NCBI GenBank assembly: GCA_040357565.1
Contig: JBDODJ010000126.1
Length of the DNA stretch: 32,324 nt
Direction: 5' to 3' (one strand)
Origin: Cercozoa sp. M6MM
Taxonomy: Eukaryota; Protista; Endomyxa: Ascetosporea
Under the pieces are notes generated by a model, which did no database searches, was not told the DNA's origin, and saw only the letters and a program-made list of their open reading frames with translations. The translations under genes and the position numbers were made by a program. Shown one piece after another: positions 1,651-20,162 of the stretch (position 1 is the first letter of the stretch; each line of letters starts with the position of its first letter).

Positions 1651-2796
1651 CTCAGTGCTTCCCAGAAAGGTGGTTTACCTTTGTTTTCATACACAGAACG
1701 CCAACACGGACCTGCGCACCGACGCCGAGAAGGAAAAGGCCGAGGCTGACCGTGCCCTATCGCTACCTTTGCTTAGAGAGTGCGTGTGCTCAATGTTTGT
1801 TTGTGTTCTCAGGTGCCTCCAAGCTCGAACTCGGCGGTGGTTCACAGGTCCTGTTGTCCTGGACTTGCGTGCATGGTGTGTGTGTGTGTGTGTGAATGGT
1901 TTTGTGGTTGTGACTCTACAGGGAATGCGCTCTCTTCCCGTGCAGCCTGATGCCAGTAGGCTTGGCTTGTCTTGGGAAACATGCCTCGTGTACATGTGTA
2001 CATTTATATGTGACGTTAGGTTCCACGAGTGCCTTGTCGCAGCTGAAGACGACACCGGCTTCGGTCGCTCTGGCGCTGTTCTCCCTGGTGCGTTGGACAT
2101 AACCCTTTCCGTCACCTTGTCTGTCTGCTATGTGGGGTGTTTGCACAGGACGCGAACGAAACGATGCACGCAGAGACGGTGAAGCAGAACCAGCCGCTGT
2201 CGCCGTCGGAAGTGGCGTCGCGCCTGCCCCAGGATGAACCACGCTTTGTCGTATACCGCTGGTAAGATAACGCTTTCAGGTAGATGTTGATTAATGTAAC
2301 GAGTGTGCACGCAGGAACTCGCCTAGTAACGGCACCAAGTACATTTTCTTGTACTGGTGTCCTTCGGGCTCCAACCCGCGTCAGCGCATGTTTTACTCGC
2401 TCGTCAAGCAGGTACTCGCACCGGCAGTCGTTGTCCGCTGTCAGTGTTACCTTTTTGGGCGTGTAGTCGCTGTCGGCGGCGATGGAGGAACTCGGTATCC
2501 AGATCGACAAGAAGATGGAGATCGATTCAACACAGGAGATTGCCAGTGGTACTTCTTCTCTGGTGGAGGGTGGGTGTGTGCTCCTTGTACAAACACGCGC
2601 ATACGATGCCTGTGACCACAGACGCAGTGCTGCAAGCGGAGCTGTTCCCCAAGGCCGTCGCTGAAACCACCTCATTCGCCCGTCCCAAGCGACCTGGTAC
2701 CGCATCCCGTTGATACGTCGAACTATGCTTTGATACGCAGTTGGTGTAGGCCGCCCGGGTCGTGGACGTCGCTTGCCCAAAAAGGCTACGTTTTAA
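795..2796 (+). CDS. TWF: Twinfilin (two ADF-H domains + C-terminal tail), 16 exons
   Basis: MASLSGIK start; AFVPTSAKVSDRMIYASSRDAVK (ADF-H1); LPQDEPRFVVY, YIFLYWCPSGSNPRQRMFYS and IDKKMEID (ADF-H2); tail FARPKRPGRPGRGRR resembles the twinfilin FAKPKGP tail. 15 phase-consistent GT-AG introns; TAA at 2794-2796. Confidence 0.93.
1607..1649. repeat. (CA)n microsatellite in twinfilin intron
   Basis: Perfect CA run starting directly after the GT donor. Confidence 0.95.
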
Positions 2797-3202
2797 AGGT
2801 CAAGCGTCATGGTTGGTAAAAAATCGACGGTACGACACTGCGTCCGACCGTGACTCGGCCAACCCTGACCACTCGGAAATTCGATCAGTGCCGTGCGCCG
2901 CCGGACCCTGCGCTGATCATGAGGCGCGTTGCGTTGCATTGTTACGTTACTGTTAACCTACGTTACCGTAGGTCGCGTACACGACCGACGCGATCGACCG
3001 GACCGGGCATTCGAGTATGCGAAACAACCGAACTGAGCGGCAAGTTTCGTGCTCATTCATTTGCGTTGTGTTTTGTTTAGTTGAATCAACTGAATAAGCT
3101 AATCGAATATAGTACGTAGACTAAACCAGTTCGTTCATCAAATTGTTACTGCACACTTTCAGTCGTCATTGCTCTGACCCGTCCGCGTGGAGGTCATAAT
3201 CC

Positions 3203-3624
3203 ATGTCTCAAACAAGTTTGAGACTGGAGAGAAGTTTAAGAGTGTTTTGGCGTGGTACCTTGCTCTGAGACCTAACTACTGACTCAGTGGATTGCTGTTG
3301 CTGTAGATCTTGCCTGGACAGAGTCCTTGCAGAGAAGCAGAAAGCTCCGTTACGGCTTCAGCCTGGTCAGTTAGCTCATTGGCTGGTTTCCATTCCACTC
3401 ACTTCGTCGTGTGTTCACAGGTGGAGTTTTTCTTAAACGCATTGTTCCGACCAAGGACGTCTTCCTTCGGTCGAGATCCAGTGGGATCACTTCGAGACCC
3501 AGTAGGGGTAAATTTATTTCACCTTCAGTTCTAACGTTGACTCAACTGAGAGACGACTTATCTAACTGACTGATTTATTTAGTCTCTCCTTTCCCTTACT
3601 GATTGGGCCATGGAGCCGCAGTAA
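3203..3624 (+). CDS. Hypothetical 79-aa orphan protein, 4 exons
   Basis: Exons 3203-3254, 3307-3365, 3421-3507 and 3583-3624 join in frame: MSQTSLRLERSLRVFWRDLAWTESLQRSRKLRYGFSLVEFFLNALFRPRTSSFGRDPVGSLRDPVGSLLSLTDWAMEPQ*. Introns carry CTAAC/CTGAC/CTCAC branch-like motifs. Confidence 0.5.
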
Positions 3625-3806
3625 CAAAATCCAATCATGTCAGTAACTATCAACGCGCGGTGCGTGTGTAGGTAGGTTCGCATCGTATCCCGTTTCGTTT
3701 ACGCAACTGAACGCATTGGCACGGCAGCTCGACTATTTTCATTTCAAGAGATCGTGCCGACGACCATCTAGATCCACGGACCATCCCAGACTGTCAGCGA
3801 ACTCGA

Positions 3807-5334
3807 CTATAAGTCGCTGTGAACGTCGGGCGTTTCTTGGCCCAGAAGGGCGCACAAGCGGTGCATCCACACATCGCGCAGCATCGGCGTCGGCAAGGCG
3901 AGCGCCACTGTCTGCGTTGTTTTGCCATGCGTGTCCTGAGTGTAACGAGCATATCAGTGATCTATCGTTTATGCATGCATGAGCTAGTACTAACCTGGGC
4001 CGTGAGGGAAAACACGTGTTTGGACAGTGTGCTTGCCTTGGTGCGCGACATGTTGCTACGCACAGTAGGCATGCTATTTTTAGTTTCGTCGGACTCGCAT
4101 CATTAGCGGAGAAAATACCTGCTCCAGACACGCACGCCACAGAGACGCATCTGATCGCTACGACGCGAGCCCCAGCATAAAGTTGCCACTTCTGCTGCGT
4201 GTGCACCAAAGATCACCCACCAAGAACGTCCATACCCCTACTTGCAACACTGAGTAAGGAAGCAGGTACCATCGGCATCATAGGCGCGAACGATGCGCAG
4301 CACGCCGAACCTGGCCGAAGCAAACCGATTGGCTGGCAGTCGTGCGCAAGCTGACACGAAGTCTTCTGCACAAGGCACACGGCCAGTCCACATGCCTACA
4401 GTAACATTCCACCCCACGGAAGAAGCACTCGACACCTGTTTGGTACAGGTTCTCCTTCGTTTGCATGTTCATGAGTCGACGCAGGATCTGTGCGTACACA
4501 CAGAAAAATTATGGCTATTTCTTACTCTATGTGTGAACATGTGAGCAGTCACACATGAAGGCACCTTGTGTTGTGCAGTGGGCGAGCCGCTGTACACTGA
4601 CGGGGAATACGTACTAGAGTCGAAAGTCGTTCCGAGCGTGGTGCTGCCGATGCTACTGGCGCTCACTGGCTCCTCCGTCACAGTGCACAGCGAGGGCTGT
4701 GGTCACACAACACACACACGGAAATAAAGAGTGGACTACAACACATACACGGAATACGGTATGCGGGGTCGACAGTCGTGGCCGCGACCGTCGTCGGAAG
4801 TCATCGTGCAAGTCATCCTGTTCAACAAGGATCCCATACTCAGTCCATACCACCCATGATACGCTTAAATACGGACAGGTACCAGGTCACTCTCGAGGTA
4901 CTGCGTGAGCGTTAGCGATGCACCTGTGTCGACACTAAGGTGCGATGTCTTGCTGCTACTAAGGGTGACTGAGGCATAGCGTTTAAGGTCGTTGCTGTCC
5001 GGCTCGGCATTGCTGCCTTGCAGCCTCTGAATCAAGGCGGTAACCTCATTGTCTGAGGATAGCACACTGGCATTCAGCTCCTCCGAGATCCACTGAACAC
5101 AGGCACCCATACACACACGCACGCACACGCACATACGTACACACATGGAGTGGACAGGAGCAATACCAGTCTGGTGCAGCCAACCACAGTGCCGCCAATC
5201 AAAGTCACGGCAACCACCAGACCGGCGTGTTCGACGCGACCGAGTGTGACGGCATACCTCCCTGATCCAGACGGTTCTATTCTCACGTGTCGACACCGGT
5301 GCTGCTCCCGCAACTCCAGCGTGCCCGATGACAC

Positions 5335-5383
<49 letters not shown>

Positions 5384-5393
5384 NNNNNNNNNN

Positions 5394-5441
<48 letters not shown>

Positions 5442-5724
5442 CACAGTATAGACAAATCGCCAGGTTGACACGTAGGACACGTAGGACAGCGTACCAACTC
5501 AGGTACTGGCACAGGTCCGTACACGCGTACTTCTGCCTGTCCTTCTTCAGCTACAGCAGACACATACATGGCAGGCAGACTGTTTGAACACAGACATATA
5601 AAGACACCTTGTTCGGAAGTAAGAGCGACAGTGAAACGGATGCGTTTGCGGCGCTTCTTTTTGCGAGGCGTGTCGTCGGCGCGACTCGTGTTCAGCACAC
5701 TGTCGGACGACACATTGAGCAGAC

Positions 5725-16131: not shown

Positions 16132-16206
16132 TACAATCCCGTCTCCAGGTCTCCAATCGAATTAGGCCTCCTACAATCCCGTCTCCAGGTCTCCAATTAG
16201 GCCTCC
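16132..16206. repeat. Tandem duplication (40 + 35 bp) overlapping the annexin stop codon
   Basis: TACAATCCCGTCTCCAGGTCTCCAAT...TAGGCCTCC occurs twice, with a 5-bp insertion in the first copy. Confidence 0.9.
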
Positions 16207-18236
16207 TCACCTGCAAACAAAACCATCATTTATTTTGAGTTGCCCGCCCCAATCGTGCTGTTGAAGACATACCAGCAAAGATCTTCAGCAACAGGCGCTT
16301 GTAGTCGCCACTTGTCTCGCTCTTAATGACCTTACGCAGCGTGCGTCCTACCCAGCAGCAGCGTAATTGACATGGCAAAACACAGAAAAGATTACCCTTG
16401 GAGAGCTCGCCAACACGCTGATCGACGAGGTGGAGATCGATTTCGCTGCGTGCCACAACGACGCGGATGAGCTTGGAGTCCTGTGTGCACATGACTCAGC
16501 ATAAGAGAGGGGAACAAGGGCGGCAATGGGACTGTGCGTACCGAGGTGCCGAGACGGTCGATGGCCTCAAACAGACGCTCGGCGAAGAGCTCGTGCGGCG
16601 CCTGAGCGTATTGCACGATGTAAACGAGGGCGTCCTCCAGGTCGCCGCGGAACTCCTTCTTGATCGACTTCACAAGCGAGTAGTCGGCGATCTGCAACCG
16701 ATATATCCAATACATCCAATGTATCCTATATCCTATATATATATATACATATATATATTGTGGCCTATACGTAAACCTAAGCGAAAAGGCCCACCTTGTT
16801 GTACTCCTTGGTGATTTCACGCAGCTGCTTGAAGGAGCGCTCCGACAGGATGCGGATGAAGGTCTCCTCATCGGTGCCGAACTTGTCGAGACCGGCGGCC
16901 TTGAGACGCCGTGCGTCGGCCTTGCATGCATTCACATCGACCGGCGTGCTCTCCGGCACACGGGAGCCTGATCCAACGGGAGGGTAGGGGTAAGGATGCT
17001 GGGGTAAAGGGGGGTACCACGCGCAATGTTGCACACGAGCGTCTCCATGCGACTGCGGAACTCCGAGGCCAGGTCGTTCACGAGGTCGCGCTGGAACAGA
17101 CGCGAGAAGGCCTGCTTGAGCAGCTCAATCTGCGCATTGGTCTTGGTCAGCAGCACCTCGCACACGGTCTTGTGCTTGGTGCCGATGCCCTTCATGGCCT
17201 TGCGGAGCGACACGGCATCGAACTGGACAAGCACAATATACATAAGTCTCAAAGGCACAGCGTCTCTGGTTCCAGTACCTCGACAGGCGTGTACAGAAGT
17301 GCCACAAGAAGGTTCTCAAAGTTTCCACTGGTCTCCTTCCTGCATGACACAGTAGCAGATACATTCCCCAGCTGTACAGTTCTTAGATATCGTGTTTACT
17401 TGATGTCCTTGACGAGGTCGCGGTTGAACAGACGCGAGAAGGCAGCCTTGATCTGCTGGCGCTGAGCGTTGCTGCGGGCGCCCTACAAATCCACACATCC
17501 GCATACCCAAATAACCTGCATGTATATGTATGCGAGGTACAATGATGTCAATAATCGCACGCTCGTTGGTGCCAAAGCCCTTCATGGCCTGTTGAAGCAA
17601 ACACACACTCACTCACTTCAAGTGTCCTTGACCTGATGGCACTGTGGTATACCTGACGCAGAGCCTGAGCGTCGCGATCGGCGTCGAAATTGGCCGCTGG
17701 CGCCACCGTAGGCGCAAACTGTCCGCATGAAAGCACCGGGGGTAGGGAGCGGGTGAGGTACACACGAAATATACCTGCGTGGTGCAGTCCGCATAGCCGC
17801 CGCGCTGCTGCTGCGGCACGGCCGTGGCCGACACAGTCGCCGAGCCGTACGGGTTCGTGCTCTGCACCGGCACAGGCTGCTGCACCGGCATGGGCTGGTG
17901 GGTCGGCATGGGCTGCTGCACCGGCATTGACTGGTGGGTCGGCATAGGCTGCGGCATTTGCTGCTGCTGCATGCCAGGCATGGGCTGTCCAGGCATAGGC
18001 TGCACACCCATTGACGTAGTCGGCATGCCTATACAAACATGTCCTCGATACTCACTGACGTGCAACACAGCCTGTGCAACGCTTTACCCGGCATAGGCTG
18101 GCCGTGCATTGGTTGGGCACCCTGCAAGTATCAAGATGCAAGGTGACTATAATAGACTGGGTGGCTGGGGAGGGGGGCACCATGCTAGAAGCCATCGTCA
18201 TCATGTTGTTCGTCATGTTCATTGCGTTGTTCATCA

Positions 18237-18325
<89 letters not shown>

Positions 18326-20162
18326 GTGGAACGCACCGTGTTGGTCATGTTGGCCATCTGTTGCGACGACATGCGCATCTGGTGACGCTGCATGCGCATC
18401 TGCACACACACACACATACACACACACACATACACACACACACCACACGCACACGCACACAGGTAATACAAAATAAGCAAGACAGTAAGGGTGACAAAGC
18501 GCTACCTGCATGTCCTGGTTCATCTGCATCATGTAGTGCTGCTGCTGCTGCGGGTTCTGGAACGTCACCTGCACCGAGAACTTCTCCCTGCACACATGCA
18601 CACACATGCATAGGTAAATCCAGGGAGGTACATCCGAGTCTGGCCTACCAGCCATCGAGGTTGTCACGGTTGCACGTGGCCATGCCGTTGCTCTCGGCAC
18701 ACACTACTCTCGCAGTGCGGTAACATCACGATCAGACAGGAGGAGGAGCGGTGGTACCGAACTTGCGATGCGCGACAGACTGCAGACCAACCCGGCCACC
18801 AGGCGCAAAGATCAAACGGAAGAGCTCCCACCTGCACAGATACACACATGTGTGGACACGGAATGTGTTAATACAAAAAGACGTACTGCTGGGCCTGTGT
18901 GCGGTTGCCGACAAAGTTACCAGTCTGCTCGGCACAGCAGTAGCGTCCGTGCGCGTTCAACCTGTGGCACAAAGATCAGTCGTGATGAAATATGAGTACA
19001 ACGGGGGAGGGGTAAAAAGAGGGTACAGGGCGAACTTGTTGTTGCCAAAGCACTGAAGCTTGAAAGTCTCCCACGCCTGCGGCACCGGACGGTTCACGAC
19101 CTGCAGAAGAGCAAGTGTAGGTGTAACAGTACACAAATAAGTGAGTGGTACCATCATGCCGTTAGCCTCGGTGCAGAGCCACATGCCATTGTGACCCTAC
19201 CATGTGTAGTATGTATCTACATACCAAGTTTCCTCTGACAGGTACCTGCATACGCAGGTTGCGCGGAGCACCGCGATCGCCACACAGAGAAAAATGCAGC
19301 GGTCCTACACAAGCACATCACATAAACATACACCCATGTGGACATGTTCTTGTGTGCACAGGTTGCTGCCTCCATGTACCGCATACGTCCGGCTCGAGGG
19401 CGTTGGCGATGTCCACCAGGTCGTATTCGTTGTTCACACCGCACTGTACACACACAGACACACACAGACACACACACAAACATACCACATGTACAGTGCT
19501 CACGCAGTGAATCGAGTCCAAGGAAAGTACGATCTCGAACTCCTCCCATTCGCGCAGCCACTTGGAGCGGCACACGAGCTGACCGGTCTGGTCGGCCGTC
19601 ACAAAGGCGCCTGTGCCTGTACGGGCATTGCAATACAAGGCACGGATATGACAAGCAGCACATATCTGAGCAAAGTACCAGCGTGCATGAAGGCGACCTT
19701 GTTCGGCTCGGTCGGCGAGATCGTGAACTGGAGAAACGCCAACAGCACATCAAAAGCACCTCGTACATAGCTAAAGTCTATATATAGTCAGTGTTACGAG
19801 CTCGTTCGGACCGACACTGCCGCCGATGAACTGCAGCACGCCGTTCACGTAGCTCAGGTAGCGACCAGTCGCCTGCGAGCGCAGGCCGAATTGCAGCGCG
19901 CCTGTCCTCCGCCGCAACAGTTTAGATACCGGAGACACAAGAGACTAGTTAGATATACTGCAGGGAGTAAGACACCCTTCGGTTCAATGACCAAGTGATG
20001 CGCCGGGGTCGCCTGCATCGCGTCCTGCATCGATGACATGCCGCTCACAAAGCGACCGTGCGCGCTGCACACAAGTTCAACGTCAAGCGGTGATGGTCAA
20101 AAGCAAACCCAGCATCGATACCTACGAATCACGACACGCGGCTGAACTTGCTGCGACATCAT
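16197..20162 (-). CDS. Fusion protein: 2 fascin-like beta-trefoil domains + Met/Gln/Asn/Pro-rich linker + 4-repeat annexin core (~750 aa, 27 exons)
   Basis: Continuous phase-consistent splicing from ATG 20162 to TAA 16197. Trefoil repeats e.g. MQGHNGMWLCTEANGMMVVNRPVPQAWETF, LLNAHGRYCCAEQTGNFVGNRTQAQQWELF, QSVAHRKFVCAESNGMATCNRDNLDGWEKF. Annexin repeats AMKGFGTNE, AMKGIGTKH, LDKFGTDEETF, IDRLGTSD, and IKSETSGDYKRLLL. Confidence 0.9.
18239..18321. repeat. (TG)n microsatellite; (CA)n on the transcript, ending at the 3' splice site
   Basis: Seen directly. Confidence 0.95.

Follow-up and report, generated by a model that had tools for sequence, protein, structure and literature searches.

The 32,324-nucleotide (nt) window analysed here, from contig JBDODJ010000126.1 of the amoeba Cercozoa sp. 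M6MM, carries on its minus strand a gene whose product consists, in order, of two beta-trefoil domains (T1 and T2), a 156-amino-acid (aa) linker in which Gln, Met and Pro abound, and an annexin core of four repeats. Judged from its exons and from its paralogs, this trefoil-annexin fusion is one gene encoding one polypeptide. We found no description of this combination in such annexin literature as we reached, and "not described" is the strongest claim we make for its novelty. By alignment, the signature shared by the trefoil repeats is the Arg...Trp-Glu-x-Phe pocket of the CBM92 glucan-binding modules. The reading that we tentatively favour, at a little under even confidence, is that the protein acts as a Ca2+-switched membrane anchor bearing a trivalent lectin-type head (T2) on a disordered linker. 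A preliminary description of the window had proposed that the polypeptide couples F-actin to membranes. Its single polypeptide with a Ca2+-type annexin core is upheld by the present analysis, but its actin part is not.

One gene and its fused paralogs

Twenty-seven exons join into a coding sequence of 2265 nt and 754 aa with zero internal stops, as established by placing the coordinates and checking the exon borders with a script. All 26 introns are of the GT...AG type and measure 48-106 nt, with a GTAC donor in 12 of them, and an in-frame TGA is found 48 nt upstream of the ATG. The stop-free splicing of 27 exons claimed in the preliminary description is thus confirmed, and the N-terminus quoted there matches the spliced translation. 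The sole splice ambiguity of the model concerns the donor of exon 7, for which an end at 19246 was preferred over 19225. The alternative GT donor at 19225 (window 19225-19245, 21 nt further downstream) was rejected because it leaves an intron of 28 nt; its use would also insert seven residues and break the otherwise gapless T2 alignment. Throughout, the joined 754-aa model was scored in local scripts, while Pfam, PDB, fold and database searches were queried with individual exons or with paralog stretches free of stops.

It is highly improbable that the splice model has wrongly joined two adjacent genes, one for the trefoils and one for the annexin. Exon 13 of the window gene runs from the last part of T2 into the linker, and all junctions from exon 13 to exon 18 are GT-AG and in frame. 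The genome holds approximately seven annexin loci, of which that on contig C46 has a Pfam Fascin match immediately upstream. This paralog (L001 = C46:22500-28500, positions 2275-4675, plus strand) has 8 exons and encodes 585 aa that comprise one trefoil, a Gln-rich linker and an annexin core. Its exon 3 (L001:2733-3300) is a single open stretch that carries the last trefoil strands, the entire Gln/Met/Pro linker and the annexin start; at the end of this exon Pfam recognizes Annexin, over the first 24 profile positions of repeat 1. Because the junction lies inside one open exon, the fusion in C46 is independent of any splice. The linker exons of the window gene share their odd composition with the C46 linker.

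A third fused paralog was found on contig C181 (L007 = C181:1-9000, positions 2473-5540, plus strand; 16 exons, 624 aa), with the order degenerate trefoil, intact trefoil, poly-Gln/Glu linker and annexin. Its trefoil-to-linker join requires a 61-nt GT...AG intron at L007:3781-3841, which was chosen over a rejected 31-nt intron. Unless the 61-nt intron is removed, the C181 trefoil frame reaches a TAG at L007:3804-3806. This stop would suit two separate genes, as would the result that limited searches of the public protein collection did not find an annotated fused protein. They are set against the open exon of C46, the bridging exon 13 with its in-frame junctions, the like linkers and a layout that is identical in three paralogs. 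None of the four other annexin loci of this genome has a trefoil nearby.

The annexin core of the window gene is 85% identical to that of C46 and 55% identical to that of C181, and five intron positions with their phases are common to the cores of C46 and the window gene. The shared core introns and the existence of three fused paralogs indicate that the fusion predates at least two duplications. The difference in exon count, 8 in C46 against 27 in the window gene, implies intron loss in one copy or gain in the other.

Three local features of the window gene were also recorded. Exon 14 (63 nt) is flanked by two intronic repeats, a (TG)-rich tract at 18403-18460 and a long (CA)n tract at 18241-18322. 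The lengths of exons 14 and 15 (63 and 57 nt) are both divisible by three, so that the frame survives the skipping of either. At window 16133-16207 the last codons and the stop are part of a tandem duplication of approximately 35-40 nt, so that the coding-sequence end occurs again immediately downstream.

Trefoil fold and pocket motif

The trefoils were scored with a local profile hidden Markov model (HMM) built from 375 domain instances in the 150 best of 2530 relatives (E up to 0.001). T1 reached 42.6 bits and T2 127.7 bits, against at most 4 bits for shuffled controls (200 for each domain), which bears out the proposal of two three-fold beta-trefoil domains. T1 and T2 themselves were scored on the local HMM only, as single window trefoil exons are too short and gave nothing usable in Pfam. 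The Pfam, PDB and fold evidence is that of the C46 paralog, whose sole trefoil aligns with T2.

In Pfam, a stop-free 101-aa stretch of the C46 trefoil scored above the cut-off for both FRG1 (34.3 bits) and Fascin (26.3 bits, cut-off 23.1); DUF7910, at 28.8 bits, fell below its cut-off. The AlphaFold model of this stretch had a mean predicted local distance difference test (pLDDT) value of 93.6, and Foldseek matched it to beta-trefoils only (designed Symfoils, fascin, CBM92, FRG1 and FGF), so that the trefoil fold expected from the repeats was recovered on the paralog. Template modelling (TM) scores were 0.83-0.85 for fascin and 0.82-0.83 for CBM92, the latter with a root-mean-square deviation (rmsd) of 1.4-1.6 Å. 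When the PDB was searched with the C46 trefoil sequence, the best matches were the CBM92 modules 7zoi (E 2.4e-12) and 7zoh (1.6e-10), which belong to a GH18 enzyme of Chitinophaga pinensis; fascin came next at 1.1e-9.

In CBM92 a WExF motif closes each of the three subdomains, and in crystals its Trp stacks on glucose, its Glu bonds O3/O4 and a nearby Arg supports the site (PMC11039641). Trp-to-Ala variants lose beta-glucan binding; the family, which is almost exclusively bacterial, binds beta-1,6- and beta-1,3-glucans (PMC11039641). At the corresponding Arg/Trp/Glu/Phe positions T2 reads RWEF in all three subdomains, the C46 trefoil RWEV, RWEF and RWEF, and T2 of C181 RWEF, RWEF and KTEF. The alpha, beta and gamma subdomains of T1 read AAHL, GNEF and SWEF, which leaves one Trp-Glu pair and no aligned Arg. 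The repeat signature given in the preliminary description for both domains is therefore complete in T2 and incomplete in T1. Intact trefoils encoded elsewhere in the genome keep the pocket, in six of six subdomains of P0001 and three of three of P0014, and among the trefoil relatives the Trp is retained in 90-92%, the Glu in 97-99% and the Arg in 79-89% of domains. At the Trp position of the aligned motif, human fascin carries Asp, Gln, Ala or Pro instead.

Since T1 scores as a trefoil despite its lost Trp, the Trp of T2 looks kept for a ligand; its retention suggests ligand binding rather than a need of folding. Multivalent lectins typically show such three-fold conservation of one pocket. 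Like T2, the CBM92 modules of C. pinensis (CpCBM92A/B) are beta-trefoils of approximately 125 aa with three subdomains that each present an Arg followed by Trp-Glu-x-Phe, and for the C46 trefoil they give the best sequence match among solved structures as well as the lowest rmsd. They differ in being secreted appendages of bacterial glycoside hydrolases with short linkers, whereas the window protein is eukaryotic, has a long linker and an annexin partner, and its glucan binding is putative.

The trefoil recurs in approximately ten genes of the genome, usually adjoining a stretch rich in Gln, Met and Pro. It accompanies DUF4476 in P0001 (C836) and in a gene on C273, and in P0014 (C1) it follows a multi-pass membrane protein. 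In P0014 several consecutive Arg come after the last membrane helix, and by the positive-inside rule the trefoil tail would thus be cytoplasmic. A stand-alone tandem pair of trefoils is encoded on C63, and further trefoil genes lie on C60, C31 and C264. Beside the C60 gene (L012 = C60:46500-53500) a run of N, perhaps an assembly gap, interrupts an open frame at approximately 5400-5500.

Annexin core, linker and feature coordinates

Searched exon by exon, the Pfam profile PF00191 gave 59.2, 43.1, 28.6, 25.0 and 22.5 bits, matches that together span four repeats, with four exons at or above the 25-bit cut-off. A six-frame search of the genome with the same profile agreed with these matches. The type II Ca2+ site, composed of a K-G-x-G-T loop and a distal acidic residue, is complete in the first two repeats; in repeats 3 and 4 the first Gly is substituted and the G-T retained. 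A check of individual residues agreed with the earlier statement that all four repeats keep the distal Glu. In the C181 paralog the loop of repeat 4 is canonical (G-x-G-T).

The linker contains 32 Gln, 30 Met and 21 Pro among its 156 residues and matched no Pfam family. A low-complexity linker between the trefoils and the annexin had been noted in the preliminary description, and this is where it lies (Table 1).

Table 1. Coordinates in the window of the trefoil-annexin gene, its exons (high to low) and the domains of its product.
Feature	Window position	Strand	Basis or remark
Whole coding region	16197..20162	-	27 exons, 754 aa; ATG 20162-20160, TAA 16199-16197
Exons 1-5	20162-20122, 20064-19976, 19901-19798, 19727-19679, 19616-19531	-	
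Exons 6-10	19443-19380, 19304-19246, 19196-19152, 19100-19027, 18961-18887	-	
Exons 11-15	18831-18758, 18703-18649, 18587-18506, 18399-18337, 18237-18181	-	
Exons 16-20	18121-18088, 18028-17775, 17718-17653, 17588-17541, 17482-17400	-	
Exons 21-25	17339-17279, 17222-17018, 16967-16795, 16691-16542, 16480-16396	-	
Exons 26-27	16347-16273, 16210-16197	-	
Beta-trefoil T1 (aa 9-123, exons 1-5), degenerate pockets	19531..20138	-	Local HMM, 42.6 bits, HMM positions 4-121
Spacer between T1 and T2 (aa 124-157, exon 6 with the beginning of exon 7)	19267..19443	-	Between HMM envelopes; no family match
Beta-trefoil T2 (aa 158-279, exons 7-13), three intact pockets	18566..19266	-	Local HMM, 127.7 bits, gapless, positions 2-123
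Gln/Met/Pro-rich linker of low complexity (aa 280-435, from the end of exon 13 through exon 17)	17775..18565	-	Composition
Four-repeat annexin core (aa 436-754, exons 18-27)	16197..17718	-	PF00191 on exons 20-26
Annexin repeat 1 (approximately aa 447-513)	17303..17685	-	Canonical K-G-x-G-T loop and distal Glu
Annexin repeat 2 (aa 522-586, exon 22)	17028..17222	-	Canonical loop and distal Glu; PF00191 59.2 bits, profile positions 1-65
Annexin repeat 3 (approximately aa 606-671)	16620..16920	-	First Gly of loop replaced by Lys; distal Glu kept
Annexin repeat 4 (approximately aa 681-747)	16283..16592	-	First Gly of loop replaced by Arg; distal Glu kept

Candidate ligands and place among annexins

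Under the favoured reading a rise in Ca2+ would bind the annexin core to acidic phospholipids, and the membrane-bound core would then hold a trivalent ligand-binding head approximately 150 flexible residues from the membrane. Because the T2 pockets correspond to those that hold a terminal glucose in CBM92, their ligand would most likely be a glycan or glycoconjugate. It could be a sugar displayed on the cytoplasmic side of a membrane, or a luminal or surface glycan bared by rupture of a phagosome or of the plasma membrane. The protein would then be a lectin-annexin cross-linker and not an actin linker. That fascin-like trefoils may bind carbohydrate had been entered as a caveat in the preliminary description; given the CBM92 pocket and the best PDB match, it has become the better-supported reading. 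Among the partners of the trefoil in close relatives elsewhere are a GH16 glucanase and a lectin propeller of the tectonin type, which we count in its favour; others are EF-hands, a C2 domain and peptidases. The fusions to EF-hands (P0064) and to C2 raise the possibility that pairing of this trefoil with a Ca2+-binding or Ca2+-dependent membrane module recurs outside annexins.

Precedents exist for parts of such a machine. Comitin (Dictyostelium p24), a cytosolic protein of an amoeba that has lectin activity, has been proposed to connect vesicles that bear sugars on their cytoplasmic face with another structure; it differs in having another lectin fold, in reaching the membrane via sugar and not via an annexin, and in its demonstrated actin binding (PMC2148174). 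In Saprolegnia an annexin has been reported to be associated with glucan synthase (PMC4656261).

Several observations weigh against a lectin-type head. Identity to CBM92 is 27-29% in the Foldseek alignments and approximately 33% in the best phmmer stretch, below the figure of at least 37% reported within the family. Human fascin often has the Glu and Phe of the motif, so part of it may be structural. No signal peptide is apparent by eye, the trefoil starting at the N-terminus, and annexins are cytosolic whereas CBM92 modules are secreted by bacteria. A six-frame search of this intron-rich draft genome revealed neither an FKS-type glucan synthase nor KRE6/SKN1 nor GH16, which is weak evidence of absence; on this result an endogenous beta-glucan is an unlikely ligand. 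Finally, the apparently cytoplasmic trefoil of P0014 is as compatible with a ligand from the cytoskeleton as with a sugar.

A more specific form of the lectin reading, which we consider improbable, is that of a damage sensor. Ca2+ entering through a torn plasma or phagosome membrane would recruit the annexin core, and the trivalent head would grab the exposed glycans, cross-linking and plugging the wound or marking the compartment.

An alternative that we rate as rather unlikely, though ahead of the others, is an adaptor that binds neither sugar nor actin, or a condensate tether of the ANXA11/ANXA7 type, in which the Gln/Met/Pro region self-associates or binds a partner. In that case the pockets would accommodate a protein or another polyol-like molecule such as an inositol head group. 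In vertebrate annexins A7 and A11 and in Dictyostelium annexin C1/synexin a long, disordered Gln/Pro-rich region precedes the four-repeat core, and for annexin A11 the logic of a tether is known. The window protein resembles them in placing such a core behind a long low-complexity stretch; they differ from it in having no folded N-terminal domain, and its linker is unusually rich in Met. That the cassette of trefoil and Gln/Met/Pro stretch occurs in at least eight genes of the genome with differing partners (annexin, DUF4476, a transmembrane protein) also favours an adaptor, as does the failure to detect beta-glucan enzymes. The exact sugar-binding triad is nevertheless conserved three-fold, and nothing points to a specific alternative ligand.

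The Ca2+-gated tether in which the trefoils bind F-actin in the manner of fascin, FRG1 or hisactophilin, while the annexin binds the membrane as Ca2+ rises, we regard as unlikely. Fascin (PF06268) and FRG1 (PF06229), actin-bundling trefoils, share fold and clan with the trefoils studied here, and both the Pfam scores of the C46 domain and its TM scores to fascin speak for a relationship. The proteins look cytosolic, the same trefoil apparently sits on the cytoplasmic side of a membrane in P0014, and the organism is an actin-rich amoeba with eleven actin genes (PMC13746701). Comitin, moreover, illustrates that a lectin-type domain can bind actin too (PMC2148174). These points concern clan membership and cytoplasmic setting, and leave the actin tether possible but unsupported. 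The two actin sites of fascin are built from four trefoils, whereas the window protein has two, one of them degenerate, C46 has one and C181 two. The conserved residues are those of the CBM92 sugar pocket, including a Trp that is absent from fascin, CBM92 and not fascin is the best sequence match, and actin-binding residues could not be mapped. The coupling to actin through the trefoils that was first proposed is thus not borne out.

The organism is a marine amoeba isolated from fish gills and placed in Apofilosa (Rhizaria), with a draft genome of 23.7 megabases in 2244 scaffolds at 52.8% G+C (PMC11069148). It was later described as Lemnamoeba sinaloensis, and a transcriptome exists (SRX22918777; PMC13746701). 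Neither of the two papers mentions annexin or fascin (PMC11069148, PMC13746701). According to a survey of 2014, no domains beyond the core had until then been described in eukaryotic annexins (PMC3894181), and another annexin survey knew one rhizarian annexin. Our literature search for annexin with fascin or trefoil returned nothing relevant.

Database searches agreed. Among the 150 best of the 2530 trefoil relatives none contains an annexin, and Pfam on 108 of the 150 concurs, while Annexin is the only family in the 29 nearest named ESM Atlas clusters with a Pfam assignment. Three further searches gave no match: word-based searches from P0014 and P0001 revealed no fused protein, and neither linker exon 17 nor a metagenome scan with an annexin exon matched anything. 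All of these negatives come from length-filtered searches or from the best-ranked matches and are weak evidence. The impression that the combination is unfamiliar among characterized annexins therefore holds for the literature and the relatives searched.

The usual picture of a eukaryotic annexin is that of a conserved core preceded by a variable and unfolded N-terminus. Here a folded and apparently ligand-binding module is fused to that core, and this rhizarian amoeba, itself little studied, has kept the fusion across at least two duplications. Were the pockets to bind sugars, a module of secreted bacterial enzymes would have been put to cytosolic use, and membrane Ca2+ signals would be coupled to glycans in a new way; should the damage-sensor form prove true, the roles of galectins and annexins, split in animals, would be united in one protist protein. 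If they bind actin, the protein would be a minimal link between membrane and cytoskeleton. Either way, it offers a clean test of the role of WExF-type trefoils inside eukaryotic cells.

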